Part shown: in pieces, positions 21,145 through 53,473 of the stretch | Numbering within the stretch: the first letter of the stretch is position 1 | Layout of the letters: every line of letters begins with the position of its first letter | Source of the DNA: Laetmonice hystrix | Lineage: Eukaryota | Direction: 5' to 3' | NCBI GenBank assembly: GCA_965235115.1 | Contig: OZ249445.1 | Span: 3,410,001 to 3,474,000 of the forward strand | Length of the DNA: 64,000 bases | Position numbers and translations under genes: made by a program | The notes under the pieces: generated by a model | Told to the model about the DNA's origin: nothing | The model's input: only the letters and a program-made list of their open reading frames with translations | Database searches by the model: none

Positions 21145-21158
21145 GCGCCACCTGGCGG
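21145..21158 (-). promoter_or_regulatory. CTCF consensus motif (reverse)
   Basis: GCGCCACCTGGCGG; reverse complement CCGCCAGGTGGCGC is 14/14 to CCRSYAGRKGGCRS. Confidence 0.55.
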
Positions 21159-21363
21159 GGGGAGGTGTGGAGGTGCGGTGTGCCTACCACACAGACTCCA
21201 GATCACTTTCATGCTGATTGAAGCCTGCCAAAAAAGACAGGAAGCGTGTTTGTGGAGACAGCGTCGACGGATGACACGTGAACTACGGAACGCACGCACC
21301 TGCGCACACACTAACGCACACACCCAACATGCACGCGCACCCCCACAAATTATCTGTGGATCT

Positions 21364-21843
21364 CTGAGACGGCTGTGTGGTCGGTATAGGGACCCGATTG
21401 TTGTGTCGTCCCTGAGACTGCTGTGTTGTGTCGTCCCTGAGACGGCTGTGTGGTCGGTATAGGGACCCGATTGTTGTGTCGTCCCTGAGACTGCTGTGTT
21501 GTGTCGTCCCTGAGACGGCTGTGTGGTCGGTATAGAGACCCGATTGTTGTGTCGTCCCTGAGACGGCTGTATGGTCGGTATAGAGACCCGATTGTTGTGT
21601 CGTCCCTGAGACGGCTGTATGGTCGATATAGGGACCCGATTGTTGTGTCGTCCCTGAGACGGTTGTGTGGTCGGTATAGGGACCCGATTGTTGTGTCGTC
21701 CCTGAGACGGCTGTGTGGTCGGTATAGGGACCCGATTGTTATGTCGTCCCTGAGACGGCTGTGTGGTCGGTATAGGGACCCGATTGTTGTGTCGTCCCTG
21801 AGACTGCTGTGTGGTCGGTATAGGGACCCGATTGTTGTGTCGT
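21364..21843. repeat. 48-bp minisatellite, about 10 copies plus two shorter deletion units
   Basis: Unit CTGAGACGGCTGTGTGGTCGGTATAGGGACCCGATTGTTGTGTCGTCC. Confidence 0.95.
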
Positions 21844-23508
21844 TGTCCCCGCCGACGGAGGATGGAGAGTGTAGGCGGGGGGGGGGGGGTATGGCAGATA
21901 TTTATTGTCACTTTGTGTACGGCCCGGCTGTTTTACGTGTTGAGTTACGGGAGGGTACAAGCAAGGCATCCCATAGGTAAACACAGCCCTGGAGAGGGGC
22001 AACCGGCACCCCTTGTACACAGTCTTCCCGCCACTTGCCAGCCCCTTTTTTCACCTGTTATTTTCTACGGTTAACCATACCTCCACTTACTTCTCCTGGT
22101 GTTCGTTTTCCCTACTCAAATGATGGCCATAACTTCTCACTTTGTAATCCCTGACTTGCGTGGGTATAAATTACACATATGTATGATGATAGAGTGTTAA
22201 GGCATATATCCTAGGTGTAGAGGATCACTGGTTTCAATGCAGAGTTTGAGATTTCTTTCTCTGTTACATCGTTGTTTCATCAAAGTTTGTAAAGTTAAAA
22301 CCGTTATTTCCCTCAAGCAGTGATATAAGAAGTAATGGGTCATAATGGTAAGGAAAACAACAAGACAGGCGTACTTCAACGGCATCTTTCTTCTGATAGT
22401 CACTAGAATGAATACAGTTAGATTATTTTGATGAAAATGTTGTTCCACCTTGGAAGCGAATGTTGTGAGCTTCCTGATGTTCGTCCCATGGCTCCCCCTA
22501 TCGGTCAGTGGTGTCATCAATCAGAGAATGAGAAGCTCGCTGTGAGAGTGTCGCAGCCATCGACCATGCACAGAGCACTCTCTCCTGACCGGGGGTGTGC
22601 CGGTATTTAGAGAAGAGCCTTGGAGATTCCCTGGGCAGGCCTGAGGCATTAGCCTAGTCCTTTGTTTTAACACCAGATGCTAGAGTCTGGTTGATTTAAC
22701 GGGGCAGGGAGGGGGAGGGAGGCATTACCACACCATTAGCCTCCTTGCTTATGTCACAGCCTCCTTGGGCGCCTCCAGTGCTCCCAGACCGGTGTTTGGT
22801 TTCAGGGACGGGTTCGGGGAGCACGGACCTCCGCTAGCTGCCAGCTGGTATTACACCAAAAACTATACCCCCAACCCCCACCCTCCCGGCGGTGGAAAGA
22901 ATAGGTTCCCAAGAAATGGAGTCATGCTTTGAGATAAGCATTGAGAGTGTCATGGGTAAACCCACGGGGGGATAGGAACAGCATTCATATGTAACTGGGG
23001 AAACTTGCGAAGAAAATCTGCAGGAGAAGTTGATAGAGTGGGAGTATTAAGTAGGAGTATTTCTTACATGCTCACACATGATTCTGTGATAGCTTATACC
23101 AACGAGACAAGACAGATTATCTAGTCATGTTGTTTGTATAGAAACACAGTGATAAAAATGTTTGAAATTGAGTTAATTCTTGGAAATTTTTCGAAGTTCA
23201 ATCAGAGCTCTTGAACGTTTGAATCATTAGTAACAGTTACAGCCAATTCACGGTCTGTAGGCAGAGAACGAAAGAGAACACATAGATCGAAGTTGTTACG
23301 GGAAAACGCTGGGAACCGGAGAGGGGGGGTTGTCCGGAAAGGGTGAGCATTGAAATATTAATTGACGATATAAGGATATAACGTCTCCCAAACCACGGTA
23401 CACGAGCCGTGGTGTGAAGTGACACCTAGCGACAAATGGGTGTAATGAGTGTGGCGAGCCAGGGTTAGGGTCATAGAACACAGGTCTGTATTGTCGTGTA
23501 TGGTGGAC

Positions 23509-24195
23509 GGGGTGGAGCGAGTATGTGGGGGTGGGTGGAGCGAGTATGTGGGGGTGGAGTGGAGCGAGTATGTGGGGGTGGGTGGAGCGAGTATGTGGGG
23601 GTGGGGTGGAGCGAGTATGTGGGGGTGGAGTGGAGCGAGTATGTGGGGGTGGGTGGAGCCAGTATGTGGGGGTGGAGTGGAGCGAGTATGTGGGGGTGGG
23701 GTGGAGCGAGTATGTGGGGGTGGAGTGGAGCGAGTATGTGGGGGTGGGTGGAGCCAGTATGTGGGGGTGGAGTGGAGCGAGTATGTGGGGGTGGAGTGGA
23801 GCGAGTATGTGGGGGTGGGGTGGAGCGAGTATGTGGGGGTGGAGTGGAGCGAGTATGTGGGGGTGGGTGGGGCGAGTATGTGGGGGTGGGTGGAGCGAGT
23901 ATGTGGGGGTGGGTGGAGCGAGTATGTGGGGGTGGGTGGAGCGAGTATGTGGGGGTGGGGTGGAGCGAGTATGTGGGGGTGGGTGGAGCGAGTATGTGGG
24001 GGTGGAGTGGAGCGAGTATGTGGGGGTGGAGTGGAGCGAGTATGTGGGGGTGGAGTGGAGCGAGTATGTGGGGGTGGGTGGAGCCAGTATGTGGGGGTGA
24101 GTGGAGCCAGTATGTGGGGGTGAGTGGAGCCAGTATGTGGGGGTGGGTGGAGCCAGTATGTGGGGGTGAGTGGAGCCAGTATGTTGGGGTGGAGT
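23509..24195 (+). repeat. G-rich 23-24-bp minisatellite, about 29 copies (GTATGTGGGGGTGG[A/G]GTGGAGCGA)
   Basis: Tandem units, each with a G5 run, nearly devoid of C on the + strand. Confidence 0.96.
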
Positions 24196-26164
24196 GAAAT
24201 GGTGGCATATACTACTACTGCTCCAGGTTACACAATACTAATGTTTTTATTGAAGAAATTCTAAGACTTACTGATAATACATTTAGTCAGACAGGATATT
24301 TATTTTTAATATTGAATAATATATATTGGGGGGGGGGGGGAGACCTGGGTACAGAGTTTAAATTGAGCCTGGAATCTGACACTAATGAAGCAGTAACAAT
24401 GATTCGACTGTCATTTCTCAATTAGAGCCAACAATTAAGGAGATCGTTGGAAGTCAGTTCTTTCCTAAAGCAGCTTTTATTATCTTAAGTGATTCATTTG
24501 AAATGTAAGCTTTTTGAAAAATCAATATGTTGAGGTTGCAATAAAATGCATGAAGGGTAGTTTTAATTAGGCTTGTCGACAGGGTGATGATCGGCACTCC
24601 TGGAGTAGAACAGAGTCATTCTGGAGTGATACTACTGAGATCTTACCTTCTGCTCGGTGGGGTAAACTAAACAAGTACTTAGAGAACCGAGTGTTTGAAC
24701 AAAGCTAAAATCATTACACCACACGGGGGTAAGCGCAGGCCCGCTGACGAGATATTGAATCGAAGATGCCAAGTTGGTTTAAAATGATTTGTCTTGATCA
24801 ATGATAAAATGAGTTATGGCAGGTTTCTTTGGGCTCTCGGCACGTGTGAAGCATTTATATGGGAGCCGGCATTGCGGCACGACTTGGGCCCAAGACGCAG
24901 AGCTCCAAAGCCGTAGCTGAACCCCGCCCTGAAAGACGCTGCCACGACCGCCTTTGAAAGCACGGAGACATCTAATGCGTGTTTTCCCCTGGTGATAATA
25001 CTCAGTTTCAGGTGGATGAATTTGGAGAGAAATGACATTAAAAGAAAACCACTGTCTGTCTGTAACGTCAGGCGGGGGCATTCTGATGGAAGGGTTGGCG
25101 GTACGGTGAGCCCGGTCGGCAGAAAGGGCCCAGGGGGCTCGGGCCAATGTGTTTGACAGGCGCCCAGGTCCCGCCGTGATTGTGTTTCATGGAGCAGTGG
25201 GCGACCCGTTCAAAATGGAAGGGCAGCCAGCGCCGAATGATTTTTCAGTATTGATTTTTCATGGTCGTGTGCATGGCTTTCTCATCATGGGTGAAGAAAT
25301 GAAATGAAGAAAGACCCTTGCTTTTGTTGTAATGGGCTTGGCTTTCAGTATGGCGGTCGCCACCCCAGTTAGTGATGACCAGCGCGGATCACTTTTGACA
25401 GTAATGGAACCTTGGCATCTCCTTTGTCATCTGCGCTCAGTTCTTCTGAGGCTAGTCTGGCTCACTGAAAGACGGGCCACAATTACATAGAAAATGGCTT
25501 CACTGATTGGATCAAATCTCTGCCATTCATTCCGCACTGAATACCCTCCAAGGAATAATGAAGTAGCAGCTCTGAGTTGAAAAGTGACTTCAATGGGCCA
25601 TAAATTTTTCAGGGACCCAATATACTTTTGTCTTTGCGAGTTTGCTTAATCTATTAATTTTGGTCTCATTTGGCGTGGCCTGCCGTGTGTGTTTAGGGGA
25701 TTCCAGGCGGTGAAATGCCCTGTCAGTGTACTGTGCCATTAGAATTGTGTACCCAAGATCTGATTGGTTGGGGGGAGGGAGTCATATGACCCGAGGAAAT
25801 CTTCCTGAGATTATCTCGGGTGTTGTGTCTGGATTTATGCCTGTCTGGTTTCCAGGCCACAAAGATGCCGGTTTCAGTCTCAATAGGCTCCTTTCAGGAT
25901 GCCAGAAAACTTTATCAGCACTTGACCAAATTCTACTTTGATGCCAATTTCAGAGCTGATGGGTCGAGGGCATGGCATCGAGAGGTCCAATCTATGACCT
26001 CAGAGAAAAGGAAGGTCAATGAAAGGGGTGCCATTATCAGAGAGACCCATTATCCTGTAGACAGTCCTTCTCTACTAATGCCCCAGCCCTAGGATAACCT
26101 TTCTTCTGTACCTGGCTGACCTTGGCCCGGGTCAGCCATGGCGTAGATGACCCTATCATGGACG

Positions 26165-26188
26165 AGGTTAAAGGTCACTGAGAGGTCA
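26165..26188 (+). promoter_or_regulatory. Composite nuclear-receptor element DR1+DR5
   Basis: AGGTTA-a-AGGTCA-ctgag-AGGTCA. Confidence 0.4.
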
Positions 26189-27829
26189 GCTTCAATATGC
26201 AAGATTACATTGTCAGGATTTAATCTAGGCGACAACATGAAACCGAAATATTGACACACGGTAATTCTTCCTTTAAATGTTATCAGTGATATCAGTGACA
26301 TTATTGAAAACCTACTAGTAAGTCGCCCCTACAAATACTTTATGGTTCAGAAATGTGGCTAGATGTAATAATTCGAGCCTGATTTATTGAGATGTGGAGT
26401 TAATTTTACGGACCTGAGTCTTGGTGTTGTCATGAGCCTGTTAATTCCCGTGAGATTGAGTCGAGGGGCCGTGGTGCCGTGAGACGAGAACAATAGTGTC
26501 CCACAGACAGAGTGCCAGCCGCGAGCAGAATGAACCCGTTATGAAAGTTTGACCAGTCCCAAACAACACCTCCCCTCACGCTCGTAAGCAGGCCACACAG
26601 GCCAAACGTTCTCACACATCCATCTATTGTCTCTACGAACTGGGCAGCACAAATTGGGTGGGGTGGCCTGCTCGGTGGCTTCACAACCATTGACAATATG
26701 TTGAAAGGGGCCCTGCTAAAACTGTACGCAACTCTTGGATACTCTTCACGGAGTGTGGGCTGTGGGTTATTGTGTTCACTGAGTGAGGCAGAAACAATGG
26801 GTCACCTGCCAAGCCACTTCTAATATCATGGGAAAACGGGCTTAGATTGCTATAAATATCATATAGAGGTCGGTTAATATTGAAAGGTTTTGTGTAGTGG
26901 GGTTGGTCTATAGGTTTATATTAATTTGTTAATCTGTAATTTTGATTTGCCAGTGAACACCAGACCACCGGGATGGTCGGGGTTAAATTTTAATGTCGGA
27001 AAGTATGAACTATTCTTAATTCCCCTGGTTACCATTATGTGTCATAGTATACAGGTGTAGAACCTACGAATCCTTTCGTGTGGCAGTTCAGAATATACAA
27101 ATAATTTGTATGTAGGTGAAAGAAATGCAGCCAAGGCTAATTGTTGGGAGGCAGTTTAGAGGCCCGGTGTGGCAGGTGGAACCTTGTCGTAACAACGATC
27201 GCATGTGTCGGGGAGGGAGAGATTTAGCTGGAGCCGAGAGGTTGAAGGAGTCGGCTGATGTTACAGGCTGCCAGAATTCTTCTGACCTGAGCGGTTAGTG
27301 GGATCCCGCGGTGGCAGGTCCCCCCCCCCCTTCATCCTGCAGTGGCAGGTCCCCCCTCATCTCGCGGTGGCAGGTCCCCCCTCATACACACACGTGTTTC
27401 CATTGTTTCCAACCCGAACTGTTTGAGATAGAGCCAGGTGAGTTACATCACTCTCACCCAACCTTACCAGCAGCCAATACGACAAGCCAGTTGTCAGTGA
27501 ACCTAACCTGGCCGTTTTCGTGCTGGTATTGACCTTTGGCGGCACAGGGAAGGATCAAGTAATTGGTGGTTCACAGAATGTCAGTCAACAATACCTCTTG
27601 TCGTCAACAACCAAACTAAAGCATGTGGAACAGAGTAGAGTTGGCAGGCGACTTCTATAATTGTTTAGAGTGTGTCAGTGTAACGGACAGGTTATGGGGA
27701 AAATTCTGTCTTCATGCCAAGTGATGTAGAGATGTCAGGCGATCTTAGCTCAGCCTCAGCCCAATCTAAGCTCACTTATGACGTTAACTAGTTAAACTTA
27801 AGCCCATGTTTCTTTTCTCTTTTTTTTAG

Positions 27830-27869
27830 AAGGAAGGCCGGATGTCGCCAGAATCTCCCGCGCCCACGG
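27830..27869 (+). CDS. SoxD: 40-nt internal coding micro-exon of the SoxD-like gene (KEGRMSPESPAPT+G)
   Basis: Strong polypyrimidine acceptor tttcttttctcttttttttAG ends at 27829 and the consensus donor G|GTAAGT starts at 27870. The exon is open in phase 0 and exits in phase 1, which is what is needed to link 6765 to 63941. Confidence 0.75.
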
Positions 27870-28419
27870 GTAAGTTTGCTAATTCTTATTTGTCTAATCT
27901 AAAACGAAGCCATAAGTATATATAAACTAAGTGAATGCACATTGTGCTACCGTCATGACTGATGAATTGTAAATTGCATTCTGGGACAATTTGGTATGTA
28001 AATGGTACAACGTTCGACTAGTTTAGAAATAAGCATCGGAAGTCGCCTGCATATAAAAAGGTAGTATGTATTTGGAATGGGATGTGTGAGTGTGAGTAAA
28101 GTCTGGAGTTTGAATAAGTTCACTTGATCGCGATATTCATGAGGAATAGTTGACTTGTCAAGATCTACTTTTTCTGCGGAACGATCAGTTTCAGTCAACG
28201 CACTGGGACGCTGGAAATATAAAGACACGCGAATAATCTTTATCAACTGACCATGAAGTTGTTCACTCTTCAACATGCATTGCAAAGGGATCCGAGGTGG
28301 AAGTGTGGAAATGTTTCTGTTTTTCATTTTGGAGGTGGTGCCTGTGACTATGTGGAGAGTGTTCAGGTGTGTGTCACGTTGTAGTAGCCTGTCCGCTAGC
28401 TGCGTGGGTCGGTATAGTG

Positions 28420-28433
28420 GCTCCCTCTAGTGG
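28420..28433 (-). promoter_or_regulatory. CTCF motif (reverse, 13/14)
   Basis: Reverse complement CCACTAGAGGGAGC. Confidence 0.45.
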
Positions 28434-29775
28434 ACAGTCAGAAGATGTCATCATTCATCCCACATCATCAGGAGCTGGCCATGCGGCTGATATTCAAAAA
28501 TGTATGGGGGTCAGTCAACAATGAAGAGTGCATCTATCATGAAACTATTGTTACCAGTGTGACACGAGTGGCCACCAATTGCTGCAATGCCATTGCAAAT
28601 GGAGAGAATAAATCACAATTTGAGGCATTCTGACTGCACCATTTATATGTGTATACAAGGCGGAGATAGGAATGACTGTTGCCGGGATCTCCTGATCAAT
28701 GCGCCTCCTCAGTTAGCCACTAACTTAGCCAGTCATTTTTAGTTGGGTGTGCGGTCAGTGAAACCATTGATATGAAATTGTTGGGCAGTGAATGGTATCA
28801 GAATGATGTAATGTTGCTGTCAGGACCTTCAGGTAAAACCTGCCCTGATGGAAGGTAAAGTCGGCCAGATAAACGGCACAGTGACTTTTCAAGAAGTTCT
28901 GCTGGCCAGATTGCATCGCGAACTTTTGGACATGATTTCTTGTTTATAGAAACAAAACATGCAGCGTGATTTAATCGTGCGGTATTTGACTCTCAGATGT
29001 CCTGGCATGATAAGAATGTGTTTTTTTTCTCGAGCTGTTCGCGAGATCTCCACCTGAGCGTGTGTCATGTGACCTCAATTTACAAAATGCTGCAGGTGAT
29101 GTTTCTTTGAAGCATGGACCCCCCAAAAAACGGAATAGGGTTGAGCAATGGATCGCCTTTGTAGTGAGTTAAGCATGTTGATCCCTCGTTTTATAGTCTG
29201 ATCCCTTTGCATCATTGTCCCATCTTATTTCCTGAGGTCGTCAGTCAATGTCAGTAGTCATGGAAGCCATTGCCAGTCCAGCCGGCCTGCCCAGATAAAA
29301 CTTGGATGAGACAACGGTGTGGGCCCTTTTATCTGTCCCAACTTATATGCAGCATTTGCTTACAGCGGCAAGGAAATTTAAACAGAGTATGAGCCGGTCA
29401 CTGGCTACTTGACTTCAAACAAGGCCCGGTCCCAGGTCTCTGACTAATGGGTAGTAAATTAACTCCTCTTGGGGGCCATCTGGGCTGGGCCTAAACCGGC
29501 GCGGCCCCTCCCGTGGTCGTCACCAGCCTTGGTGCTGTAGTAAACTTCCTGCCGGGTGAGAGCGTCCACTACAGTAGTCTTTGTTTGCGACCTGGCAAGT
29601 TTATGCCCCCTGTCGCCACTAGCTGTCAGCTCCCGCGTCTTGTCCTTCCACTGACATTGGATGTGACGCGACCTTGCTGTGACCTTGGCGCTTGACCTCC
29701 TGTCGTTCACTTGACCCGGGGACCTTGGTGAAGGATATGCTGTGTAATGGTACAACATGGAAGCTGGCAGGCTGA

Positions 29776-31201
29776 GGTCTGCGATCATGGTCGGTTCAGA
29801 CCAGCGCTGGGCCATCATGGACCCATGCCATCAGCAGGGTCTGCGATCATGGTCGGTTCAGACCAGCGCTGGGCCATCATGGACCCATGCCATCAGCAGG
29901 GTCTGCGATCATGGTCGGTTCAGGCCAGCGCTGGGCCATCATGGACCCATGCCATCACCAGGGTCTGCGATCATGGTCGGTTCAGACCAGCGCTGGGCCA
30001 TCATGGACCCATGCCATCAGCAGGGTCTGCGATCATGGTCGGTTCAGACCAGCGCTGGGCCATCATGGACCCATGCCATCAGCAGGGTCTGCGATCATGG
30101 TCGGTTCAGACCAGCGCTGGGCCATCATGGACCCATGCCATCAGCAGGGTCTGCGATCATGGTCGGTTCAGACCAGCGCTGGGCCATCATGGACCCATGC
30201 CATCAGCAGGGTCTGCGATCATGGTCGGTTCAGACCAGAGCTGGGCCATCATGGACCCATGCCATCAGCAGGGTCTGCGATTATGGTCGGTTCAGACCAG
30301 CGCTGGGCCATCATGGACCCATGCCATCAGCAGGGTCTGCGATCATGGTCGGTTCAGACCAGCGCTGGGCCATCATGGACCCATGCCATCAGCAGGGTCT
30401 GCGATCATGGTCGGTTCAGACCAGCGCTGGGCCATCATGGACCCATACAACCAGCAGGGTCTGCGATCATGGTCGGTTCAGACCAGCGCTGGGCCATCAT
30501 GGACCCATGCCATCAGCAGGGTCTGCGATCATGGTCGGTTCAGACCAGCGCTGGGCCATCATGGACCCATGCCATCAGCAGGGTCTACGATCATGGTCGG
30601 TTCAGACCAGCGCTGGGCCATCATGGACCCATGCCATCAGCAGGGTCTGCGATCATGGTCGGTTCAGACCAGCGCTGGGCCATCATGGACCCATACCATC
30701 AGCAGGGTCTGCTATCATGGTCGGTTCAGACCAGCGCTGGGCCATCATGGACCCATGCCATCAGCAGGGTCTGGGATCATGGTCGGTTCAGACCAGCGCT
30801 GGGCCGTCATGGACCCATGCCATCAGCAGGGTCTACGATCATGGTCGGTTCAGACCAGCGCTGGGCCATCATGGACCCATGTCATCAGCAGGGTCTACGA
30901 TCATGGTCGGTTCAGACCAGCGCTGGGCCATCATGGACCCATGCCATCAGCAGGGTCTGCGATCATGGTCGGTTCAGACCAGCGGTGGGCCATCATGGAC
31001 CCATGCCATCAGCAGGGTCTACGATCATGGTCGGTTCAGACCAGCGCTGGGCCATCATGGACCCATGCCATCAGCAGGGTCTGCGATCATGGTCGGTTTA
31101 GACCAGCGGTGGGCCATCATGGACCCATGCCATCAGCAGGGTCTGCGATCATGGTCGGTTCAGACCAGCGCTGGGCCATCATGGACCCATGCCATCAGCA
31201 G
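29776..31201. repeat. 62-bp minisatellite, 23 highly homogeneous copies
   Basis: Unit GGTCTGCGATCATGGTCGGTTCAGACCAGCGCTGGGCCATCATGGACCCATGCCATCAGCAG; period 62 (29776 to 29838). Confidence 0.98.
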
Positions 31202-32533
31202 GAAATCGGTCCAAATGATATAAATCCTGTCACACTGCAGGCAAGATCTCCCAGAGTCGTTGTCGTGTCGCACGAGTCGGCGGAGCACTCAGACGGAATG
31301 CGAGCATCCAAAACGGGTTATTAAAGTTTAAAAGTACATAAAGAACAGTCTCAACAGGCTGTAAACACTGGTTGTATTCTTTCGTTTTCCTCCACGAAAA
31401 CGGTAAAAGTTAAGGACAAAAACTGTTGGTGGTAGATGATTCAGATTGAGTCAGTCCCGAGTTGATGTAGATGAAAGGGGACTAACAACCTCGGCAGTAC
31501 ATAGCCAAGATGACTGAACAAAAAAAAGTGGGTTGTCTCCATCACATCATCAACTACATTAGCCATCTCAGATGGTATTCGTATGATTGATTGTACCTTG
31601 TCAAACGGCGGGTGAAGGCAGGAGCCCATTAATAATTGAAACCACACTTTCACGTGCTGCTTGAAATAATAGTCAAGAACAAAGTGTTGATGACCTGTAT
31701 GGTGTAGCCGCTGTGGCCGCCAACCGTGTGAAATATGAAGGGCTGGATACTCGGTTTCTCTGGTTCTTAGTCGTCATGTGGTCGGGCATCTTGTGGGTCT
31801 TCTTTTGTCAAAGACATGGGTAAAAACCACGGGGAATTCAATTAGTCGTTGGCCATTGATGGATGGCAAGTACGCGCTGGCAGTGATTGATGCGGGTAGA
31901 GCTCAAACTGTTTGGTTATTGATATCATGTCCTGTGCGTGCCCTCTGTATTAAAACCTTTCATGTTTCCAACTCCCTGTCAACCCCGACACTGACTTCAT
32001 AGCTACCCATACCCCCAACCATTGTACTCAAACTCAGATAGGTTGGAGTTACATGTTAACACAGTGAGCCATGCGGTCTGGTCCTCAACACGGGCTCCTC
32101 GTGTTGTTGGTGACTCGAGTCCCACTCACCAAGTGGCACCGACGTGTTGGTGTGTGGCTTTTATACAGCGCTCTTACTTTCTTACTTTTATAAATAGTTG
32201 TTTCTCAATGTTAGATTGAATCCTCCCATAATCTGATGGAGATCCTGACGTGTGATCAAGCATGAGATGTTGCGAATCTCAGACGGTCCGCGAAGGGAGT
32301 TTACTGGGACACATGGACCTAACAGTCCGTGGTCTATGTTTGGGTGTTTGAAGGTCTTAGGACAGCCCGCAAGACGGCACCAGGTTTGGGAAGTTCTCCG
32401 AGTCATGGACGGTCCAGGGTAGTGTGAAAACCAGCGATCTCTTCGATCTGTGTATCGATATATAATGCAATCAATTATCACCTATAGTAACGACAATAAA
32501 CCGGACTCATAAAGTGTCCAGTTCGGGGTCAGA

Positions 32534-39736: not shown

Positions 39737-40052
39737 GGCTTGCCGTTGTATGACATCACGGCTTGCCGTTGTATGACACCACGGCTTGCCGTTGTATGAC
39801 ACCACGGCTTGCCGTTGTATGACACCACGGCTTGCCGTTGTATGACACCACGGCTTGCCGTTGTATGACATCGCGGCTTACCGTTGTATGACATCAGGCT
39901 TGCCGTTGTATGACATCACGGCTTGCCGTTGTATGACACCACGGCTTGCCGTTGTATGACACCACGGCTTGCCGTTGTATGACACCACGGCTTGCCGTTG
40001 TATGACACCACGGCTTGCCGTTGTATGACACCATGACACGGGTTGTATGACA
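39737..40052. repeat. 23-bp minisatellite, about 13 copies (GGCTTGCCGTTGTATGACACCAC)
   Basis: Period 23 (39737 to 39760); decays at the right end. Confidence 0.95.
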
Positions 40053-41226: not shown

Positions 41227-41240
41227 CCACCAGGGGGCGC
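41227..41240 (+). promoter_or_regulatory. CTCF consensus motif (forward)
   Basis: CCACCAGGGGGCGC(TCT); a 17-bp exact inverted copy of 37162-37178. Confidence 0.65.
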
Positions 41241-43481
41241 TCTCACCAGACGCAGGCATTGACATGGGTGTGTGGTAAACTCGCCAACAAATGGGGGTTA
41301 TGCCACTGTCGCCACGCAGATAATGTACATGGATTATTGTAAGCCCACTGTGCAATAAAGACTACACAGCTATTTGCTGGATGTGCAAGGTTTAATTTAG
41401 TGGAAATGCTGCAGGCCCTACCAAGGGCCCGAGCTCTGGCGAAAAGGGGACTGTTGGCGGGCTCCAATCACCCGTTACACACTAGGGTCGTACATGTGTT
41501 TATATTAGGGCAAAATCGAGCCAATTTTTGTCTCGAAATGTGCTAACACGAACAAGAATGGCAAGAGCAAAGGTTTCAAATGTGCCAGGTTCACCTCTGT
41601 GGCGGGAGGTGTGGATGGAAGGAGTGTGCGCTGGCTGGAAACAGAGCAATCCTTCAGAATATTGCCTGTCTCTGGGTATTGCCTTGTATTGTTCTTAGAA
41701 GGTTATTAAAAACTGAGCTTCATGGTTGAGATGTGTGCAAACAGTGCGGCTGGATACCATTGTGGTGTGTGTGAGGAGACCATGGCCGTCTTTGGGGTCG
41801 ACACAGTTGACAAAGGGCCAATCTTAGCGGGGATTACGGCAGAGAGCCTTCGCTGACACGACGGGATTTATTGTCGGAGCCAGCCAGAACTTGTGAGGAC
41901 AGCTTTGTTCTGCGGAAATATAAAAAAATCCGAAGTAAAAGATTGCAGAACTCATGTCTTGGCTGCTTTTGTGTTGGTGAGTGAGAGCTGTAAGATGACG
42001 GCGGTTTGAATACAGCATGACGTCTTCAGTGGCGAGGTTCCTTGGAGGCTGCTTCAGGGCAACAAAGGTCTAAGATCAGAGGGGAATGGGTGGGTTGGGG
42101 GCCACAGGTTGGCGGGTAGAATTATCAGCATTGTTTCCTGGCCTGCCCTTTGCTGTGGGCTGAGTGTCGGGCCGCAGGGGCTCCAGCAATCGGCCTTTCT
42201 CTCCTGGCAATGGATACGATGACCTAGGAAGTCATTGAAGTGCCTATGAGGTTGCTGGCTGAGCAAGGAGATGGATATGTTTGAGATGCAGGAAGTCGGG
42301 TATCAGAAGGGCAGGGCAGGCGGCCGTGAGGAGGGCAGGGGGCGGTTACAGACACTCGACAAAGACGTCGGTCCCAACAGTCGGAGGTAGATAGTTGTGT
42401 CCGGATCCAAATGGCACCCTTCAGACAAAGCATCTATAAGAGCGATATGAAGAGTAATGTGGACGGCGGCTGGTCGGGAGCTTTGATCAGGGGCGCGTGG
42501 CCAGCTCCTACCTGATCATATTCATATATGTACACCATGGGGCCTTAGAGATACACGCGGGCGCCGGGGGAGGGCATGACGGGCCTTTGTTCTAATGAAT
42601 GGATCCTTACTTAATGTACATTGTAATGGCCTGATCCATTACATGAATACCATTCCCAGAAATCATTCCCTTGAATCTACCAGACCGACTGCTGATCGTC
42701 AAAACTTGTTATTCGGTAGCCAACATTTGCATTATGGCAAGCTGGTTGGGAGTAACTCAATATTGAGACATCGCGGGGTCCCAAGCACTAATGTGTGGAT
42801 CAATGTTCGGGACAGGCTGGCAGTGGTGAGCTACTGGCCACAGACAAGAACGGGTGGAGTGGGCTCCTTACAAGACCCTCCCTTCCTGGTCACAAGGCGA
42901 TGTGCTCTCTTCTCGTCAATATGGGACGGATTGGAAAAAAACCCGTCCATTTATGTCGGCCGCCAACACGGAAAGCCAAGCCCCTCAGCCGGAGAAGTGG
43001 TGCCACATTAATGACACCAAGTTCACAGATTGTGCCCCAAGGAGGCCAGCCTACACGTCAACTCTGGCTTCAGTTATTATACGGGATAATATTTTCCTAT
43101 TGGAGGCGACAGATGTGACGCATTGCAGGCGTTTGTGTCAGCTAATCTAACAGGTCAAGGGGGGCTTGAAATGGCACTGTAAGCAGCGCAAGATTTAGAT
43201 ATCTGTGTTCGGGGATGGAGTGGTTTGAAAAAGGGCAGATGTACGTGCTATCTGTGTGCTGGCCATCGGGGCACTCCTGTCCCTGCTTGTGACACAAGAC
43301 ACAACTTTCATCTCCAACTCATGCTCCTCTTATGTAACAAAAAAATTATTTATTTCGATCTTGTCTCCTTTAAATCAAGAGCCCTCACTCTGGAGAAGTT
43401 TTCAAGAGACCAGGGAATGAAGTTTATCTCTTGGAATTTAATAAAGGTGAGAGTTGGTGTGTTTGGGATGTGGAGTATGGT

Positions 43482-43650
43482 CAGGGTTTCCTGGAGATTT
43501 TCGACTTTTTTTTTTTTTGGGGGGGGGGATGGTGCGAGTTGGGGGGGGGAGAGTAATGCAAAATATTTCCCCTGGAAATTGTTTGGGGGGAGTAGCTGAA
43601 TAATGGGGGGGTGTCTCCCCCCCCAAAAAAAGGGCCTGCAGGAAACCCTG
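43482..43650. mobile_element. 169-bp MITE (non-autonomous DNA transposon) with 12-bp TIRs and a 5-bp TSD
   Basis: CAGGGTTTCCTG (43482-43493) and CAGGAAACCCTG (43639-43650) are perfect inverted repeats. ATGGT flanks both sides (43477-43481 and 43651-43655). Internal T-run/G-run and C-run/A-run extend the symmetry. Confidence 0.8.
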
Positions 43651-46371
43651 ATGGTGTTGAATGTGTTAGTGTTGTATGGTGTTTGGTTCCGTGTCGCTGG
43701 GTGTAGGGATGACGATAGAGTTGTCGATCAATAGCCTAGGTCTCCGACGGATAACCTCACATAATTGGACATCACTGGTGGGCCTGACCTGCCGTGTGCT
43801 GCAATAATAAAATCAAACACCCGCTGGGATGGAGGCGGTGGTGAGAATTCATATTTGTTTTATAGCTGAAGGGGCCATTGATGGGATTTACAAGGCCAGA
43901 AAAGGTCCCATAATTAGGGAATTTGGGAGCGGCACAAAACTGTAGAAATCCATAGTAGTTTTCTGCCTGTTGCACCGTGCCCCCCAGTGACTCGGTTGGT
44001 TGGGACCTGTGTGATTTTTCCTATGAAAGAATGACACGTGGCATCAATACAATTGTAATCTCAGCTGGGTGAATCAATAAGCCAGAAACCGGGCATTGAT
44101 TGGGTCTAATTGTCTCATCAACACACCGCTCAGCCGGGGAATAACCCTCTATGACATGTGGTCTCCAGTAACACCATGGCAAACAGGGAGGCAGATGTAG
44201 GAACAAGTGGGCAATGTATGTTTGCAGGGCATTGGTAGAGCAGGAGTGCTGCTTGCAGTAGTCAGTCTTACCAACGAGTATAGATTCTATACTCGTTGGT
44301 CTTACCAAGCAGGACTACTGCTGACATTATTGCATGTTTTGTGGATAAACTGCTGGCTTTAACCTTGGGTTGTTATTCCATGGCTATACATGTATATCCC
44401 GGCGTATAGAAAGTCTAATGAACAATGATATATGGCTAGACAGGACTGATGGACATCTACTGACGGTTGTATACCACCCATACCCACACCCCTGAACATA
44501 CGTCTTACACAGAGAACTAATTACTTAGTAACTGTGGCGTGCCGCTTGTAGGGGCTCTATACTGGCTCACATCACTTTGTGCAAGATAAAGAAACGTGTC
44601 CAATTGGTTTTGTAAATGGCCGTAATGCACACGTAAAACAAAATGTGCTTTTGTGGGCTGTGGGCCTCAGGAAGCAATAGACGGCGAGAGGCCTTTGATT
44701 CTCAGTGCTATAAACGTTAGATGGACTGGGAATTGTGTTCTAACAGGCACTGATACCGTGTGGAGGAAATGGTGCCGATCACGGTGCAAAAACACAGGCG
44801 GAGCATTTGTTACGGCAGCTTAATTGGCTGATTGTTGTGTGTCCATGTCACCATATACATGGGCTCGGGGGAAGGCCGACAGGCCAGCACTTCAAACGCA
44901 CCACATCACGTCACAATTAAGCTAAACTGAGTGAAAAGTAAAAGACATTATGGAGAATGAGAAAGGGAAGAGCGGAGTAATTAAGTAGAATACAAGTCTG
45001 CAGTAATGGACTGGCTTCAAAGGTGCATGAGGAATTGGCGAGGCCGCATTTTCAATTAGACTCCATTATCATTGATACCGTCATAGTGCGGCTGTATGAG
45101 AGAAAGCTGGTTGGTTGTGTGACCGGCCCAGGTATGGCATCAGGTGTGCCACAGGTGGCTACGACTTGTTACAGCCTGACCGTAACTCAGCAAGGCCAAC
45201 ATGGTCGTTGGTAAACAGATTATCAAAAACATGGTACATAATCCGTCTCGGAGGCTAATCCGTCTCGTTGTTGGTGAGGTGGGGATTAGCAGGATCGGTA
45301 CGGAGCTGAAGTAGGGAGTAATGAAGGTCGGCTTTCTCTGTCACAATGACCTGTACCAACCAATGTGGAGTGTTTGGGCACCAAGGGAGGGTGTAATCGT
45401 TCTGAGTTACCGAATGGTGGAGGAAGTGAAAGACTGATATAAACGGAACAGCAAGAACACATTGTGTCGAGTCCGGAAAAAAAAATGTTGGCTGTGGACC
45501 TGTAAGGGGCGGGGATTCCCAGGGGTACAGGGTGTCACCATTTGGACACAATTGGTCTAATGGTCCGCCCCCAGGACCTCATATAACGTCCGGACCTATT
45601 ACACCTGGTGTCCTGACGAATGAAACACGGAACCTGGTCTGACATCCGACTTTCTTGTAGTCGGCGGGATGTTAGGGAGGACACAGTGGCGAGTGGTTTT
45701 CACCCCACTGTGGAGGTGGTCCAGGCCGGAGTGCGGGCGGGTGGCGACAGTGATGGAGTTAGCCACGTGTTGTTTGCCACACACAATAATAACTCCCGCC
45801 GGGGAGCCACTGAAATGCCACAGTTGTCTCTGGCTGGCCGATTCGTTTTGTCTAACCGCTGATTGCGCCAGGCCTTACACCCACCTACACCGGGAGTGGG
45901 CCGCTGGTTTTTTTCTGTGAAGTTTTTGTCTTCCTTCCTTCTCCAGCACCTCAGTCTACATCTGACCTTTATTGTCAGTTAGGCGTCATTTCCGAGACGG
46001 TACGCGGCCACCTTTTCATATCAGTCTGACCTGACCATCGCCAGCGCCGGGGGGCTCCTTGGAGAGGGTTGTTTATCCTGACTGAGGTGATGACAAGTAT
46101 TTGGTAATTATTGGAACCAATTATTTCAGTGTGTGAGACTTACGGGCTGGTATACTGAACAGAAATCTCAGTATCCTGTCTGAATGTTTTCATGTAATAC
46201 AAAAACAAGCTCTACCCCGTGCGAGTCGTAATAATGGATTCATTTATCCTTGAAAACAAAGGGTATTGTAAATGTGATCGGGTCGGGTCAGGAAAAGTTT
46301 TCACTATTCAGCAACGATTGGAGGAACTGAGATAAGGTCATGGAATAAACGAAAGGTCAGGCAGGATCGGT

Positions 46372-46487
46372 TGGCAGACTGACTGGGTGGCTTGCTGGCA
46401 GACTGGCTGGCAGACTGGCTGGCAGACTGGCTGGCAGACTGGCTGGCAGACTGGCTGGCAGACTGGCTGGCAGACTGGCTGGCAGTC
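46372..46487. repeat. 12-bp repeat (TGGCTGGCAGAC)n, about 9 copies
   Basis: Direct inspection. Confidence 0.93.
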
Positions 46488-46643
46488 TGATGTAGCTAGC
46501 CGGGATCAGACATTGGTGGTGAAAAGGTGCATGATTTACCCCTGGCCTTGCGGCGATTGGAGGAGAGGGGGTATTGGATGGGGTCACTTTACCTGACTTG
46601 GCGTTATCAAGATCTACCAACAATCCCTATCGTAGCTCCCCGT

Positions 46644-46920
46644 CCACTCACAGCCCTCCCAACTCGTAGTTTCACCACTCACCGCCCTCCCAACTCGTAG
46701 TTTCACCACTCACAGCCCTCCCAACTCGTAGTTTCACCACTCACAGCCCTCCCAACTCGTAGTTTCACCACTCACAGCCCTCCCAACTCGTAGTTTCACC
46801 ACTTACCGCCCTCCCAACTCGTAGTTTCACCACTCACAGCCCTCCCAACTCGTAGTTTCACCACTCACAGCCCTCCCAACTCGTAGTTTCACCACTCACA
46901 GCCCTCCCAACTCGTAGTTT
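46644..46920. repeat. 31-bp minisatellite, about 9 copies (CCACTCACAGCCCTCCCAACTCGTAGTTTCA)
   Basis: Period 31 (46644 to 46675). Confidence 0.95.
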
Positions 46921-49871
46921 CGAGGCCATATTCACAAACTGTCAGGAGAATAGGGCAGTGTAATATGAAGACAGGAAGTTTAGTGTGGTATTTAGAGGGG
47001 CATGTTTTTGACATTATCATTAAATCATGTGGCTCTGTTTGCCCCTTTGTCTCTTATTGTCTCCCAAACTCACCCACCCCAGACCAACCCCACCCCACAC
47101 CACCACCCCCAGACCAACCCCCCCACCCCCAACACCAATTCCACCCTACGCCTGCCAACTTTTTGCTACGTTTCCGGTGTTAAGATGTAAAGGTAAAACA
47201 GGTGACTTAAACAGATGTGAGTTTTTGTTGTTGATGAAGAACATGGCTTATGAAATGTCAGCGAAGAACGGAAGTCATGGCAGTCATGCACGCTCCTGAA
47301 GGAGATTGTTTGCCATTTTATTAGAAAGACAACAACAGGGAGGGGGGATATTTCATATGTAGGTCACCCTTCTGGTTCAAACTCAGGCAGCCGCTTTGTG
47401 TTTGGATAAAAGGCTCTCCGGACAAAATAGAGAAATAAAAAAACAGAGATTGTGATTGGTGGAGTCTGTAATATTTCAATGAAGACCCGTCGCCATGCTG
47501 TTCCTGAGAACAGGATGACATGTTGGGAAGACAAAGCACTTCTTGACGCTGCTCCAGGTGGCAGAATTGTTGAGCCTTAGTTTGCAAAACTTTTATTATA
47601 TTGAGAATTTGTATTTGGTGCTTGTGGTTGAGGTTAGTAATAGAAAGGGTCTTGGTTTTGTTGGCCGTGGGGATGGGGGTGGGGATGCAGGGGGTAGGGT
47701 TATAGATGAAAGATTTTGACCAGTGGGCCAGGCCAGCCAGGCCTGTTGTTATGTTTACAGCGTGCAGCCCCATCTGGTGAGCAATGATGAATATGGTGGC
47801 GTCGATCCCAGAAAGCTGTGTGGTTATGCAGGTGGAAGTTGTTGCGGGCAAAGTGAGCACGCACAATAACCGGCACCGGGACACAATCCATCCACCACCG
47901 GCGCATTTCTTTGTAAGTGGCGCCATTCGAACCGGGCGTCGTTTGGTGATGGAGCCACTTATTTATATATGCCACATAATGGGGCAGCGAGGATCAGCCC
48001 CGCGCGGAGAAACACTTTTAATTCACGGACTTTGGGAGCGGGTCAGTGAAGCAGAGATGACTGTATGACCCTGAGTACGTATGGTTTGGTAGCCCTGCCA
48101 AGAAAGGGCTGGTCGGCCGGGTGGGTTGGAAGGGGGGGGGGGGGGGCACGGAGCTGCGGTTGGCTGAGAGGCCATATGCCTTTAGGAGAGGTCCATACAG
48201 ACATCCAATTCTGGGATTTAATCCGCCAGTTGTCAAAGCAAAACCGAGCGGCCAAGGTTAAGTAACATGTCGGGGGTTAGCGATGGGCAGGCGTGGCTTG
48301 CATCCTGTTGTCGAGCGCAGGAGGCCGAGGGCGAGGATGGCTTGGTCAGTCATGGAGACAGAACTGTGGAACAGGAGATGTCAGGAGTGAGGGCATTACG
48401 GGCCGGGCCGGGCGCCCCCCACCGCCTGGGCAGCGGGCGCAGGACGCCGGTGGGCACACGGCTCAATATGCCACAATACATCACATCCCCGGTCAATGAC
48501 TCCATGCACACATTAATGACCCCTTGTCCACAAATATAGAAGAGTGCATTGGGCTGCACACTATTGATGTACGACTGCCCGATCGAAGCGACTTGACCTT
48601 CGGCTGGGCAAAATAATGAAAAGCAGCCGTTGCCTATCCATACAAGTGTGCGCCTGGGAGCGGCTACTTGTCGCCGGGCGGGGGTCGGGGCTTGCCGTCA
48701 GCCGGGGTGCCGGGGGTAATCCACACGGCAGGCCGCCATGTCTCCCCACGGCCATTATGACCACACAATATTACCCTCTACACCCCAAACATCCATCCTC
48801 TTTCCCCTATCTACCCCTGCTGACCCATCTAAAGCACGTAGCCGTCCGAGTAGCGGGATGAAGGCAGCACTTAGGTTCATCTCGACCCCAAGTCGGTGTA
48901 TCTGTACCCTTACATCCCCCAACACCTGGCCATGATCCCCTATTACCCCCACCCCCGACCCGTCAGCTGACCATTCGGATCACCCCCACCCTGACCGCGG
49001 CCGGGGACAGAGGCCATGCCGCGGGGATCATCACTGAGTACCGTGATGATCCCCGTATCAGGACTGTGTGTGGGGCGCGCCCTGACCGTCACCGTGAAGG
49101 TCGGGCCGAGCAGGAGGAAGGAGAGAGTTAATCACCACCGGACGGTCGGCAACATTAACACCGCTCAGACAACTGTCCGACACAACATCCCATCCTCTCA
49201 ACCTCGCCACTTCTTGTCAAAGTCAGCAAAGCTTCTTAGAACAAAGACTAATTAAACAGGCAGGATGGGGTTGGGACATGGAGGGTGTGTCGGTCAATGA
49301 TTGGGTGTAAGGGGCCGGGCCTGAGCTTCAATAACAACGGCTTTCCTCCCCGCCCACCCGACCCAAGACGGATTGGCTAAATCATCTTTCAGGGAAACAA
49401 TCCCTGACAGGGGTCTTGCACCAAGGGAGATACATAATAATTTGTGGCTCATGTCGAGGGCAAAATCGGATAAAGTGCATTCATTTCCATAACGCATCTG
49501 ATGAAAGGGAGGGTCGGTGGTGAGTAGTGCAAGTGTACGAGGTGCCTGTGCCGGCTCAGCCGCCGCTCTAAGACCCGATGCCTTACACCAAAGCAGATCA
49601 CAGGGTCACATACTTTTCCAATTTGGAGGGGCAGGCACGGCACTGGCATTACGACAGAGCTGTAATTAAGGACCCGGCTTGCATATGTTGGGGTGAACAA
49701 AGGTGGAGAAAGAAGGCCGGCCACAACTGAACAATAGGCCTGGGGCGAGGGATTGTGGACTTAGGGGGAGGCAGTGTCGATGGAATTGGTGGAGACGAGG
49801 CCAAGGTTGACACTACTGCTGTGTTTGTTTGCCTTGAGAGCATCAGTGGTGTGGTAGGGTAAGCAGATCGT

Positions 49872-49885
49872 CCACCAGAGGGCGC
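49872..49885 (+). promoter_or_regulatory. CTCF consensus motif (forward)
   Basis: CCACCAGAGGGCGC, 14/14. Confidence 0.6.
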
Positions 49886-51394
49886 GGTGGTGGGCAGGTC
49901 GTGCCGGTGTGGGCAGTGTGGGTGTGCCGGAGGTCAGCGAGATGTGGGCAGGGGCCAATCTTGTTATCATTACTGAAACAATGCCCGCACTCCCTCCGCT
50001 CAAAGACGGTGCATTGAGAATGGGAGCGGCCAGGCAGGCACAGATTATGCCCGTGCAGACACCGTCGAAGGGCCAAAGGCTGGTCTGACGGTAAATGGCG
50101 CAGAAATATCTACTGGAGCAAAGAAATGAGTGGAGAATGGCAACGAGGCAAAGGGTGGGCTCTGTGATGGGGAGGCAATTAGTGGGAGGCAGGGAGGGTC
50201 CGACATGAGTGTACAGAGGCTTTGATAGGACGCCCTGAATAAAAAAATACAGAGGCAAGTAAAGAGTAGGCAGAAACAATGACAGCAGTCTAAAACAATT
50301 TACTTTAAACAAAGTTTTTCTCTAGTACGTCCAGACAATATGAGAGGTTGGGATTGCAGTGTTGGAGAGAGAACAAGAGAAGGGTTTACATTCTTGCCTG
50401 GCTCCGAGTGGGAGAGTGCGGAAGTGGTCAGACGGTGTTTAGGGCAAGTGTTGAAGGGCACCAGGCGCCTGGCTGTCACTGGACATGTCAGACTGACCAG
50501 CGGGACGCTGGTTTAATGATGGACTGTCCAGTGATGAGGGCTGCTGGCCGCCACCGCCGGGACATATGATGGGCACATGTGGTGGCTGCAATCCAGCTAT
50601 CCAACCCTCTCACCCCCACCCCGCAATCCACCCAGCTCCATTGTCACAGTGATATGTGTAACTAGATCCCCGACTCGCGCACTGACTCCAGTGGTGCCTG
50701 TTTGGGCGGAGCCTCACCCCCAGCATGGGCCTCTGCCCCGGCTCAGACCCGACCCTTGGCCACCGCCATAATCCGCCGGTGACGGCCATATAAGGCCAGG
50801 GTCAGCCGGCCAGTTATCGGTCAGTGCGTTTTGATATTAGTAGCTCTTAATGGCGGAGCAAACAGCTGCAGCTGGCCGACTGCTGGACCTTTGTGGTGTG
50901 GAGGAATGTCGTGATCTCCCGGCATGGAGAGAACTACAGCCGCTCGGCCCACCATTACCACCGCGCCGCCTGTCTCTACTCCTCGGCCCTACTTACCCCG
51001 TCTTTATGATGCTGCTTCCGCGGCCGCTGCACCAGGATGACCCCAGATGTTCAGAGCTAACACCATAACAGCCAAAGAAATACAAATAGAAATTGTCTCA
51101 TTTCATGAAAAACATCCTCTGGCTCCCCAAGACTCTAGGTGTGCCAGTGATGCGGATACTTTGCTCCTCTCCTACCATCAGGGTCCTGGCACCCATAGCC
51201 GAGTTTTTAACTCGAGGGGTAGGGGGTGGAGGGGAAGAAAGGATTTGAAGGGGGAGATATATTGCGTCTATGCGGGTGTCTTCTTGATTCTTTACGTACT
51301 CGGAGAGCACTGAGGGAGTGCCGTAACTGAAGGCGCGAAGTTCGGGAGGAACAGGTGAAAAGTGGGTGGATGGTATCAGGGACCACCGGTAGCG

Positions 51395-52321
51395 GGAAAA
51401 CTAGCGGGGTATGAAGGACCCTGTGTGGGATACAGTGGAAGAACTAGCGGGGTATGAAGGACCCTGTGTGGGATACAGTGGAAGAACTAGCGGGGTATGA
51501 AGGACCATGTGTGGGATACAGTGGAAGAACTAGCGGGGTATGAAGGACCATGTGTGAGATACAACGGAAGAACTAGCGGGGTATGAAGGACCATGTGTGG
51601 GATACAACGGAAGAACTAGCGGGGTATGAAGGACCATGTGTGAGATACAACGGAAGAACTAGCAGGGTATGAAGGACCATGTGTGGGATACAGTGGAAGA
51701 ACTAGCAGGGTATGAAGGACCATGTGTGGGATACAGCGGAAGAACTAGCAGGGTATGAAGGACCATGTGTGGGATACAGCGGAAGAACTAGCAGGGTATG
51801 AAGGACCATGTATGGGATACAGCGGAAGAACTAGCAGGGTATGAAGGACCATGTGTGGGATACGGCGGAAGAACTAGCGGGGTATGAAGGACCCTGTGTG
51901 GGATACAGTGGAAGAACTAGCGGGGTATGAAGGACCCTGTGTGGGATACAGCGGAAGAACTAGCGGGGTATGAAGGACCATGTGTGGGATACGGCGGAAG
52001 AACTAGCGGGGTATGAAGGACCATGTGTGGGATACAGTGGAAGAACTAGCGGGGTATGAAGGACTATGTGTGGGATACAGCGGAAGAACTAGCGGGGTAT
52101 GAAGGACCCTGTGTGGGATACAGTGGAAGAACTAGCAGGGTATGAAGGACCATGTGTGGGATACGGCGGAAGAACTAGCGGGGTATGAAGGACCATGTGT
52201 GGGATACGGCGGAAGAACTAGCAGGGTATGAAGAACCATGTGTGGGATACAGTGGAAGAACTAGCAGGGTATGAAGGACCATGTGTGGGATACAGTGGAA
52301 GAACTAGCAGGGTATGAAGGA
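51395..52321. repeat. 43-bp minisatellite, about 21.5 copies (GGAAGAACTAGCGGGGTATGAAGGACCATGTGTGGGATACAGT)
   Basis: Period 43 (CTAGC at 51401 and 51444). Confidence 0.97.
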
Positions 52322-52605
52322 TATAGAGACGGGAAGCTGGCGAGCCTCCAGTGGACGTTGACAGACAAGGCGGCCTGCCCCCAGAAACCTGATGAAAGCA
52401 CCCTCAGGGTCAGCTTCTATTCTCTTCTCGAGACAGGATGCCGCCGCTGCTGTTGCTGGTAGCCATGGCGCACACCTTGGAAAAGATTCGCCAATCTGTG
52501 CCAGTTTTTCCCCTCTGTTCTTTGACACTCGTGATCTATGAATGCAGTAAATAGCTGTGGACCAGATAATGAAGACATAATGTAACCTCAAACACATAGT
52601 CCTCG

Positions 52606-52684
52606 TCTACCTTGGATGACATGTTAATGTTACAGTCCTCTACATCTACCTTGGATGACATGTTAATGTTACAGTCCTCTACAT
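52606..52684. repeat. 39-bp tandem duplication (2 copies)
   Basis: TCTACCTTGGATGACATGTTAATGTTACAGTCCTCTACA at 52606 and 52645. Confidence 0.9.
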
Positions 52685-53459
52685 TCATGGTGTAGTCGAA
52701 TGATATACGATTGACGCCCATCAATGCTGGCCTGGCTGTTACTGGTCCTGGAGCCAACTAACTTCATACCTTGGCTGTACACAGTTAACACTTAACCTGT
52801 CGGCTCAAACTACCAGCTAAACAAGATACTATAAAACCGTGTAACGTGTGACAACAGCCAACAAAAGTTTTGTTCCGATGATATTGTTGAGATAATGTTG
52901 GGTGGGTTCAATATGTTTTTCGGAAATACTTATTGAGAGTTGGGCGCCCGCTACATGCACGTACCGCGCTGAGAATGGTCGCCTCCGTACCGCAATGCCA
53001 CCTGCTCTAGGTGTTACATGATTGTGCTTGCGTACAGTAAAGGTAGCTTTTACAATTATACCAGAAGAGAAAGGTAGGTAACATAGGGATTGTGTCCGTG
53101 ATTCACTACGTGATGACACATGCAGTGGGAGGCTGGCGAAAAGTTTGTATGGTCGGATCCTTACCCATCTTTCTGATAACTCACACCTATAAAGATGATC
53201 CTGGGCTGATTTTGTCATTCCTTGTTTGAATACGAGAGATTGGGATGGATGTTTGAATGATGTAGTGGCGAGCCAGCTGAGCGGGTTTACATGTGTGGGG
53301 TCGTCAGTCAATGACAGTGTCGGAGAGCCTGGGTGGCAAAAAGTGACAGTTCTGTAGACTACTAGGGTTTGTCATGTGGGTGTCACATGGCGGCGGTGTG
53401 GTGGTGTAGGGGGTCGGACACCACGGAGACGGCCCTCACCGCCCCCAGCCACCGGCTTG

Positions 53460-53473
53460 TGGCCACCTGGTGG
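53460..53473 (-). promoter_or_regulatory. CTCF-like motif (reverse, 12/14)
   Basis: Reverse complement CCACCAGGTGGCCA. Confidence 0.35.

Follow-up and report, generated by a model that had tools for sequence, protein, structure and literature searches.

CTCF-type motif sites in the first coding intron of a SoxD gene of Laetmonice hystrix and their genomic background

A stretch of 64 kb from the Laetmonice hystrix genome (C11:3,410,001-3,474,000, within an assembly of 627 Mb) was analyzed, and is called the window here. It contains the beginning of a SoxD gene and a number of motif sites of the type recognized by CTCF, all of which lie in the first coding intron of that gene. To judge from their match to the motif, these are genuine CTCF-type sites. 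An earlier note on this DNA had described them as a polarised array with a divergent switch and as a candidate chromatin boundary. Positions given without a contig name are those of the window.

The SoxD locus and its CTCF-type sites

The host gene was identified by tblastn. SoxD proteins of Owenia, Patella, Geukensia, and Potamilus match the window from residue 1 onward at approximately 5983-6790 on the + strand. This is coding exon 1 (5983..6790, with an approximate 3' end), which contains the start codon region and the N-terminal part of the protein, and an open reading frame at 5962-6891 spans the match. The HMG box is split over two exons on the + strand, C11:3478147-3478257 and C11:3478895-3478996, which are located 4-5 kb past the window end. 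The nearest full-length relatives of this HMG-box gene are lophotrochozoan SoxD proteins, those of Owenia, Patella ("SOX-5/egl-13"), Geukensia ("putative SoxD"), and unionid mussels. Additional SoxD exons within the intron were sought by tblastn with E values up to 5, and none were found. Since SoxD matches occur at about 5983-6790 and then at 64,406, with nothing convincing between them, all of the CTCF-type sites lie in a single + strand intron of about 57.6 kb (6800..64000 in the window, reaching the next detected exon at window-coordinate 64406). The earlier note had placed the array inside the SoxD introns, and this placement is borne out, with one intron holding every site.

The sites were defined in two ways. 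An exact consensus, given as the International Union of Pure and Applied Chemistry (IUPAC) pattern CCRSYAGRKGGCRS, was searched on both strands. In addition, an MA0139-like CTCF position weight matrix was used. This matrix is approximate, and all bit scores given here rest on it. The pattern has four exact matches in the window, 21145(-), 37165(-), 41227(+), and 49872(+). Dinucleotide-preserving shuffles contained a mean of 0.06 matches, and none of 100 shuffles reached four. The four matches and the hand-calculated expectation of about 0.06 that had been reported previously were therefore both reproduced.

The matrix scan of the window identified five strong sites (at least 18 bits), 15081(-), 28418(-), 37163(-), 41224(+), and 49869(+), and three medium sites, 21143(-), 22489(-), and 53458(-). 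Three of the strong sites are canonical motifs that were found by both pattern and matrix. These are 37163..37181 (- strand, 19.6 bits, core CCACCAGGGGGCGC), 41224..41242 (+ strand, 20.8 bits), and 49869..49887 (+ strand, 19.9 bits, core CCACCAGAGGGCGC), the last with single-copy flanks. The site at 28418..28436 (- strand, 20.0 bits) also has single-copy flanks. The fourth exact match, CCGCCAGGTGGCGC at 21145..21158 (- strand), scores only 13.1 bits with the matrix. The previous list of sites was incomplete, as the strong reverse site at 15081..15099 (18.3 bits) and the medium reverse site at 22489..22507 (14.7 bits) had been overlooked. Among the sites that had been listed as weaker, 28420 is real but strong (20.0 bits), and 13784 (4.0 bits), 33427 (2.4 bits), and 47551 and 59617 (8.6 bits each) score low. 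A reverse exception to the polarity, listed at 53460, was recovered as the medium site at 53458..53476 (- strand, 13.3 bits).

The sites at 37163 and 41224 are the left and right members of a divergent inner pair. They share 17 identical bases in inverted orientation, are 4.06 kb apart, and face away from each other, just as had been described. Contigs from three DNA runs of one sample were compared with the assembly in this region. Between 36,500 and 42,000, about 52 positions (about 0.9%) distinguish the run contigs from the assembly, with several small indels, and one run contig lacks 39,165-39,578. These are likely haplotype differences. The inner motifs have no variants as compared with about 0.9% variant positions over 36.5-42 kb, though just 0.36 would be expected in 38 bases.

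Other matrix matches are present in and near the window. Three medium matches (9.5-13.7 bits) at 6,561-6,633 fall on a short coding motif that is repeated in coding exon 1 of SoxD, and these matches almost certainly arise by coincidence from the coding sequence. A forward CTCF-type motif of 19.0 bits at window-coordinate 64,330-64,348 lies 76 bp before position 64,406, where the tblastn match to the following SoxD coding exon begins. A 15.7-bit reverse motif at window-coordinate 68,676 is located between the two HMG-box exons.

Density, orientation, and surroundings of the sites

The background for these sites was obtained from the whole genome. The pattern CCRSYAGRKGGCRS occurs 17,733 times in the 627 Mb, compared with 312 occurrences of the reversed pattern, which is a 57-fold excess. 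This background amounts to 28 per Mb or 1.81 per 64 kb. The four matches in the window are thus 2.2 times the genome mean, with a Poisson probability of 0.11 for four or more. On contig C1, 6 of 75 windows of 64 kb (8% of the windows, covering 4.9 Mb) have at least four matches. The strong excess that had been claimed for the array does exist when the window is compared with random sequence (0.06 by shuffles), but not when it is compared with the genome.

The neighborhood was also scanned with the approximate matrix. The scan covered 274 kb, which are the window, 200 kb upstream, and 10 kb downstream. At 15 bits or more, 26 sites were found in this region, compared with 2.1 in Markov simulations and 0 with the reversed matrix. 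Five of these are in the window, and the flanks (210 kb) have 6.4 per 64 kb. At 12 bits or more, there are 13 sites in the window and 12.2 per 64 kb in the flanks, and at 18 bits or more there are 5 and 3.05. Site density is higher between -185 and -120 kb than in the window itself. Given the genome-wide counts and the equal density in the flanks, the excess is not specific to the window. It is a property of the genome and of the neighborhood, not of the SoxD intron. By these two measures, the density of the sites does not set them apart as a special array, since with the matrix it equals that of the flanks, and with the exact pattern it exceeds the genome mean only about twofold. A longer, species-specific motif was sought around the 26 regional sites, and no flanking position was informative.

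The strong sites in the window follow the order - - - + +. A permutation test in which the split point was left free showed that random orientation equals this polarity in 31% of cases for the five sites at 15 bits (P = 0.31). At lower thresholds the values are P = 0.25 (nine sites, 13 bits) and P = 0.37 (11 sites, 12 bits). In the 274-kb region there are 15 orientation runs at 15 bits, with 13.7 expected, and a second block, ordered - - - + + +, is found at -155 to -130 kb. Opposite-strand neighbors within 10 kb, as read off the regional site list, are five convergent and five divergent pairs. The reverse-then-forward order is compatible with chance, as random orientation often yields such an arrangement.

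The general motif class elsewhere in the genome is similar. The first 100 exact CCRSYAGRKGGCRS sites on C1 form 47 runs, with 50.9 expected, and convergent neighbors are separated by a median of 27.1 kb, divergent ones by 28.9 kb. Among the matches listed, pairs within 10 kb were counted by hand as six convergent and six divergent. No orientation signal was therefore found in this class in runs, median gaps, or close-pair counts. The earlier note had regarded the polarity as meaningful, and had itself stated that a motif density and a polarity no different from the genomic background would speak against a boundary. The permutation values and the run counts do not bear the polarity out, and both properties are largely at background.

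The sites in the window are not carried by a repeat. No alignment exists between the flanking sequences of the four exact sites, and the 26 regional sites have no common flanks, except for a 98-bp similarity between two upstream sites. Searches of the whole genome with the segments 36,900-41,500, 49,620-50,140, and 28,170-28,690 returned only self-matches. Repeated parts of the window, namely the minisatellites at 23.5-24.2 kb and 32.5 kb and an element of about 170 bp at 43,482-43,650, do not carry a CTCF-type site. An origin of the window sites from a repeat family was rejected because the flanks are unrelated and single-copy. This explanation had been raised previously as one that could account for the motifs, and it does not apply here.

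A number of other features were found in the window. The element at 43,482-43,650 is a dispersed, SINE- or MITE-like repeat (short interspersed nuclear element; miniature inverted-repeat transposable element). A first look gave 489 candidate copies, and those that were scored have 83-90% identity and are spread over many chromosomes. A transfer RNA (tRNA) scan detected no tRNA-like part in it, and Rfam and tRNA scans of the whole window gave no matches. Minisatellites are present at 1,078-2,102 (36-bp unit), 23,479-24,214 (about 24 bp), 29,652-31,315 (62 bp), 32,518-33,088 (31-33 bp), 39,737-40,033 (23 bp), 46,582-46,953 (31 bp), 51,263-52,465 (43 bp), 56,583-57,139 (35 bp), and 62,682-63,374 (42 bp). 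The one with the unit of about 24 bp has diverged relatives at many loci. The possibility that a CpG island or an internal promoter separates the inner sites was rejected, as only small fluctuations of the CpG observed/expected ratio and the 23-bp minisatellite are found there, and nothing convincing. On the coding strand of SoxD, G exceeds C throughout the window (GC skew of 0.05-0.24), and the CpG observed/expected ratio is 0.64. These values are consistent with transcription-associated strand asymmetry and moderate methylation.

The CTCF gene and the most canonical motifs

Laetmonice hystrix possesses a CTCF gene. It was found with a search using a probe of fingers 5-6 and with PDB alignment at C7:17,405,466-17,411,952, and it has six exons and 11 C2H2 fingers. 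With the human finger 5-6 probe, this locus has 76% identity, compared with no more than 55% for over 150 other zinc-finger matches. One of its exons is colinear from end to end with human CTCF residues 307-372 (PDB 7w1m, 7w1m_H). A PDB search with the exon for fingers 6-8 was dominated by generic zinc-finger similarity and did not discriminate. The recognition helices of fingers 3-7 look close to those of human CTCF. The cohesin-contact motif SVYDF is encoded in an exon upstream of finger 1. The lack of a CTCF gene, which had been named as a possible objection to the boundary, is thus removed. The genome also has very large tandem clusters of C2H2 zinc-finger genes at C8:24.4-28.7 Mb and C19:12.08-12.13 Mb, with dozens of matches to the two-finger probe.

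Three of the window sites, 37165, 41227, and 49872, consist of the two most canonical 14-mers, written together as CCACCAGRGGGCGC, and lie within 12.7 kb. Genome-wide, this class has 1,049 members, which corresponds to 0.107 per 64 kb, and the control has 2. Pairs were counted in merged listings of both 14-mers for C1-C3 and part of C4, which together hold 180 loci and span about 191 Mb. Adjacent motifs on opposite strands form 40 divergent and 40 convergent pairs overall, and 8 divergent and 1 convergent within 35 kb. Triplets of the canonical motif with the order - - + and spacings of about 3.33 and then about 2.85-2.98 kb were identified at C1:33,838,939-33,845,124, C3:7,974,640-7,980,573, and C4:2,454,189-2,460,527. 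A spacing of 3.35 kb is also seen at C1:27,216,015-27,227,478, and C2:43,276,787-43,280,149 is listed with the recurrent triplets.

Canonical motifs are found in tandem elsewhere as well. At C4:18,784,497-18,814,218, at least 10 copies of CCACCAGGGGGCGC on the same strand are 3,281-3,326 bp apart, forming a tandem array of a unit of about 3.3 kb. At C3:42,168,451-42,169,530, six canonical CTCF motifs on the same strand are present in 1.1 kb, in an array that resembles a minisatellite.

Interpretation and significance

The favored reading, which is held to be reasonably probable, is that these are ordinary CTCF-type sites, present at a genome-typical density in the first coding intron of SoxD, and that their orientation is without demonstrated architectural meaning. 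The CTCF of the species most likely binds the strong sites, as the motif, the factor, and the literature suggest. By analogy with other non-vertebrate bilaterians, the bound CTCF probably acts locally and independently of orientation.

Several points weigh against this reading. The binding itself is something that we infer. At 18 bits, the 274-kb region has 5 orientation runs compared with 7.7 expected (z = -1.6). The CTCF protein retains the YDF motif, which is required for polar cohesin blocking in vertebrates. Three sites of the CCACCAGRGGGCGC class in one window have a Poisson probability of about 2e-4, for a class that was picked post hoc. Within 10 kb, the adjacent opposite-strand pairs of this class are seven divergent and none convergent among the 180 loci, and the inner pair in the SoxD intron is an additional divergent case beside those seven. 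These pairs bear on a wider claim, that the most canonical CTCF motifs form tight divergent clusters in this lophotrochozoan genome and that the SoxD pair is a further independent example. This claim is considered unlikely. At least four of the seven pairs have near-fixed spacings of about 3.33 kb and 2.85-2.98 kb, and the fixed-spacing triplets are probably copies of one repeated cassette that inflate the apparent divergent bias. As these pairs look like cassette copies, the count of seven to zero does not represent independent events. The SoxD inner pair is single-copy and has a spacing unlike that of the cassette, so it is not a copy of it.

The same observations can be read as signs of a boundary, in which the divergent pair at 37.2 and 41.2 kb and its co-oriented flanking sites would act as a vertebrate-like, orientation-dependent CTCF/cohesin boundary and split the SoxD landscape into a 5' and a 3' domain. 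The order - - - + + in the window is continued by + + at 64330 and 72585, and forward sites farther upstream, at -131.8, -119.8, and -43.3 kb, would supply convergent partners. The close grouping of top-class 14-mers, the divergent pairs, and SVYDF would fit such a boundary, and a CTCF-like motif is enriched at the borders of topologically associating domains (TADs) in squid (PMC9023564). Against it, the polarity is not beyond chance, the density is the same as in the flanks, the general motif class has no orientation signal, and the divergent pairs probably include one cassette in several copies. In addition, published protostome and echinoderm data contain no orientation-dependent looping (PMC13317027; bioRxiv 10.64898/2026.10.19.760054). 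The YxF motif is kept in most bilaterians, including those without CTCF looping (bioRxiv 10.64898/2026.10.19.760054), and the presence of SVYDF is therefore permissive and not diagnostic, being necessary but not sufficient. On present knowledge, a polarised boundary is not likely.

It is somewhat less improbable, though still unlikely, that the motifs are not functional CTCF sites at all, and that they are bound by another C2H2 protein or are unbound relics of ancient repeats or of a compositional process. The huge C2H2 expansions (3,201 first-look candidates, with the clusters on C8 and C19) could supply such a protein, some motif copies elsewhere lie in tandem arrays and repeated cassettes, and the sites have no visible local CpG-island or accessibility signature. 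Against this, the motif is 57 times as frequent as its reversed control and about 30 times as frequent as in dinucleotide shuffles, an excess that argues that this particular motif is being selected or generated. The genome also encodes a complete CTCF orthologue, and the flanking sequences of the sites, in the window as among the 26 in the region, are unrelated and single-copy. A further idea is specific to the inner pair. Its 17-bp perfect inverted identity over 4.06 kb, along with the motif triplets of fixed spacing that suggest motif-bearing cassettes in the genome, could point to terminal inverted repeats of a mobile element of about 4 kb, with outward-facing CTCF motifs that would be divergent in either direction of insertion. 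This is very improbable, and was rejected, as the identity stops at the motif plus three bases and the segment 36,900-41,500 is single-copy in the genome. Inverted repeats of 40 nt or more are absent from the window, and the spacing of the pair does not resemble the recurrent one of 3.3/2.9 kb.

The favored reading, of ordinary sites at genome-typical density, can be compared with known systems. Like bilaterian CTCF sites in general (JASPAR MA0139 core), those described here have the same core of 14-19 bp, a cognate 11-finger CTCF is encoded, the motif is over-represented genome-wide, and the sites, each present in a single copy, are scattered over introns or intergenic DNA. A bilaterian origin of CTCF was reportedly described by Heger et al. 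in 2012. Among the matches listed here, the third core position appears by eye to be G (CCG...) much more often than in vertebrate sites. Repeat-borne expansions of CTCF motifs are known, an example being rodent SINE B2. They are similar to the tandem arrays and fixed-spacing cassettes found elsewhere in this genome, and differ from the sites in the SoxD intron, which have unrelated, single-copy flanks.

Two comparisons concern orientation. Vertebrate TAD boundaries with divergent clustered CTCF sites (PMC7422557, PMC9279147) share with the SoxD intron a reverse-then-forward pair, here 4 kb apart, co-oriented flanking sites, and YDF in CTCF. The SoxD arrangement differs from them in that it is within chance, its density is not above the local background, and it belongs to a clade without demonstrated orientation-dependent looping. 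The orientation-independent CTCF usage of Drosophila and echinoderms (PMC13317027; bioRxiv 10.64898/2026.10.19.760054) is similar in that motifs are enriched and that, in samples of the general class, orientation is statistically random. Echinoderm boundaries are enriched in CTCF motifs with no orientation pattern (PMC13317027), and protostome orientation metrics are near 1 (bioRxiv 10.64898/2026.10.19.760054). The random orientation in the general class of this genome agrees with these published data. The genome is unlike these systems in its high density (28 exact motifs per Mb), in its 57-fold enrichment, and in the apparent short-range divergent bias of its very strongest sites. For spiralians, only the motif enrichment at squid TAD borders has been reported (PMC9023564, PMC10658181, PMC13652810).

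The sites bear on whether the orientation grammar of CTCF predates vertebrates, a question for which data from spiralians are almost absent (PMC10658181). The SoxD locus does not settle the origin of this grammar, as its motifs are genome-typical and their order is within chance. What has been gained is a measured background for this genome, which includes the density of exact motifs, their enrichment, an intact CTCF with YDF, and a general class that has no orientation signal. The sites in the SoxD intron were also shown not to be repeat-borne. In addition, the short-range divergent bias of the strongest sites provides a lead. Should this bias persist after repeats are masked, a vertebrate-like boundary grammar would for the first time be indicated at the level of sequence in a protostome, and the SoxD intron would then be a good locus in which to test it.

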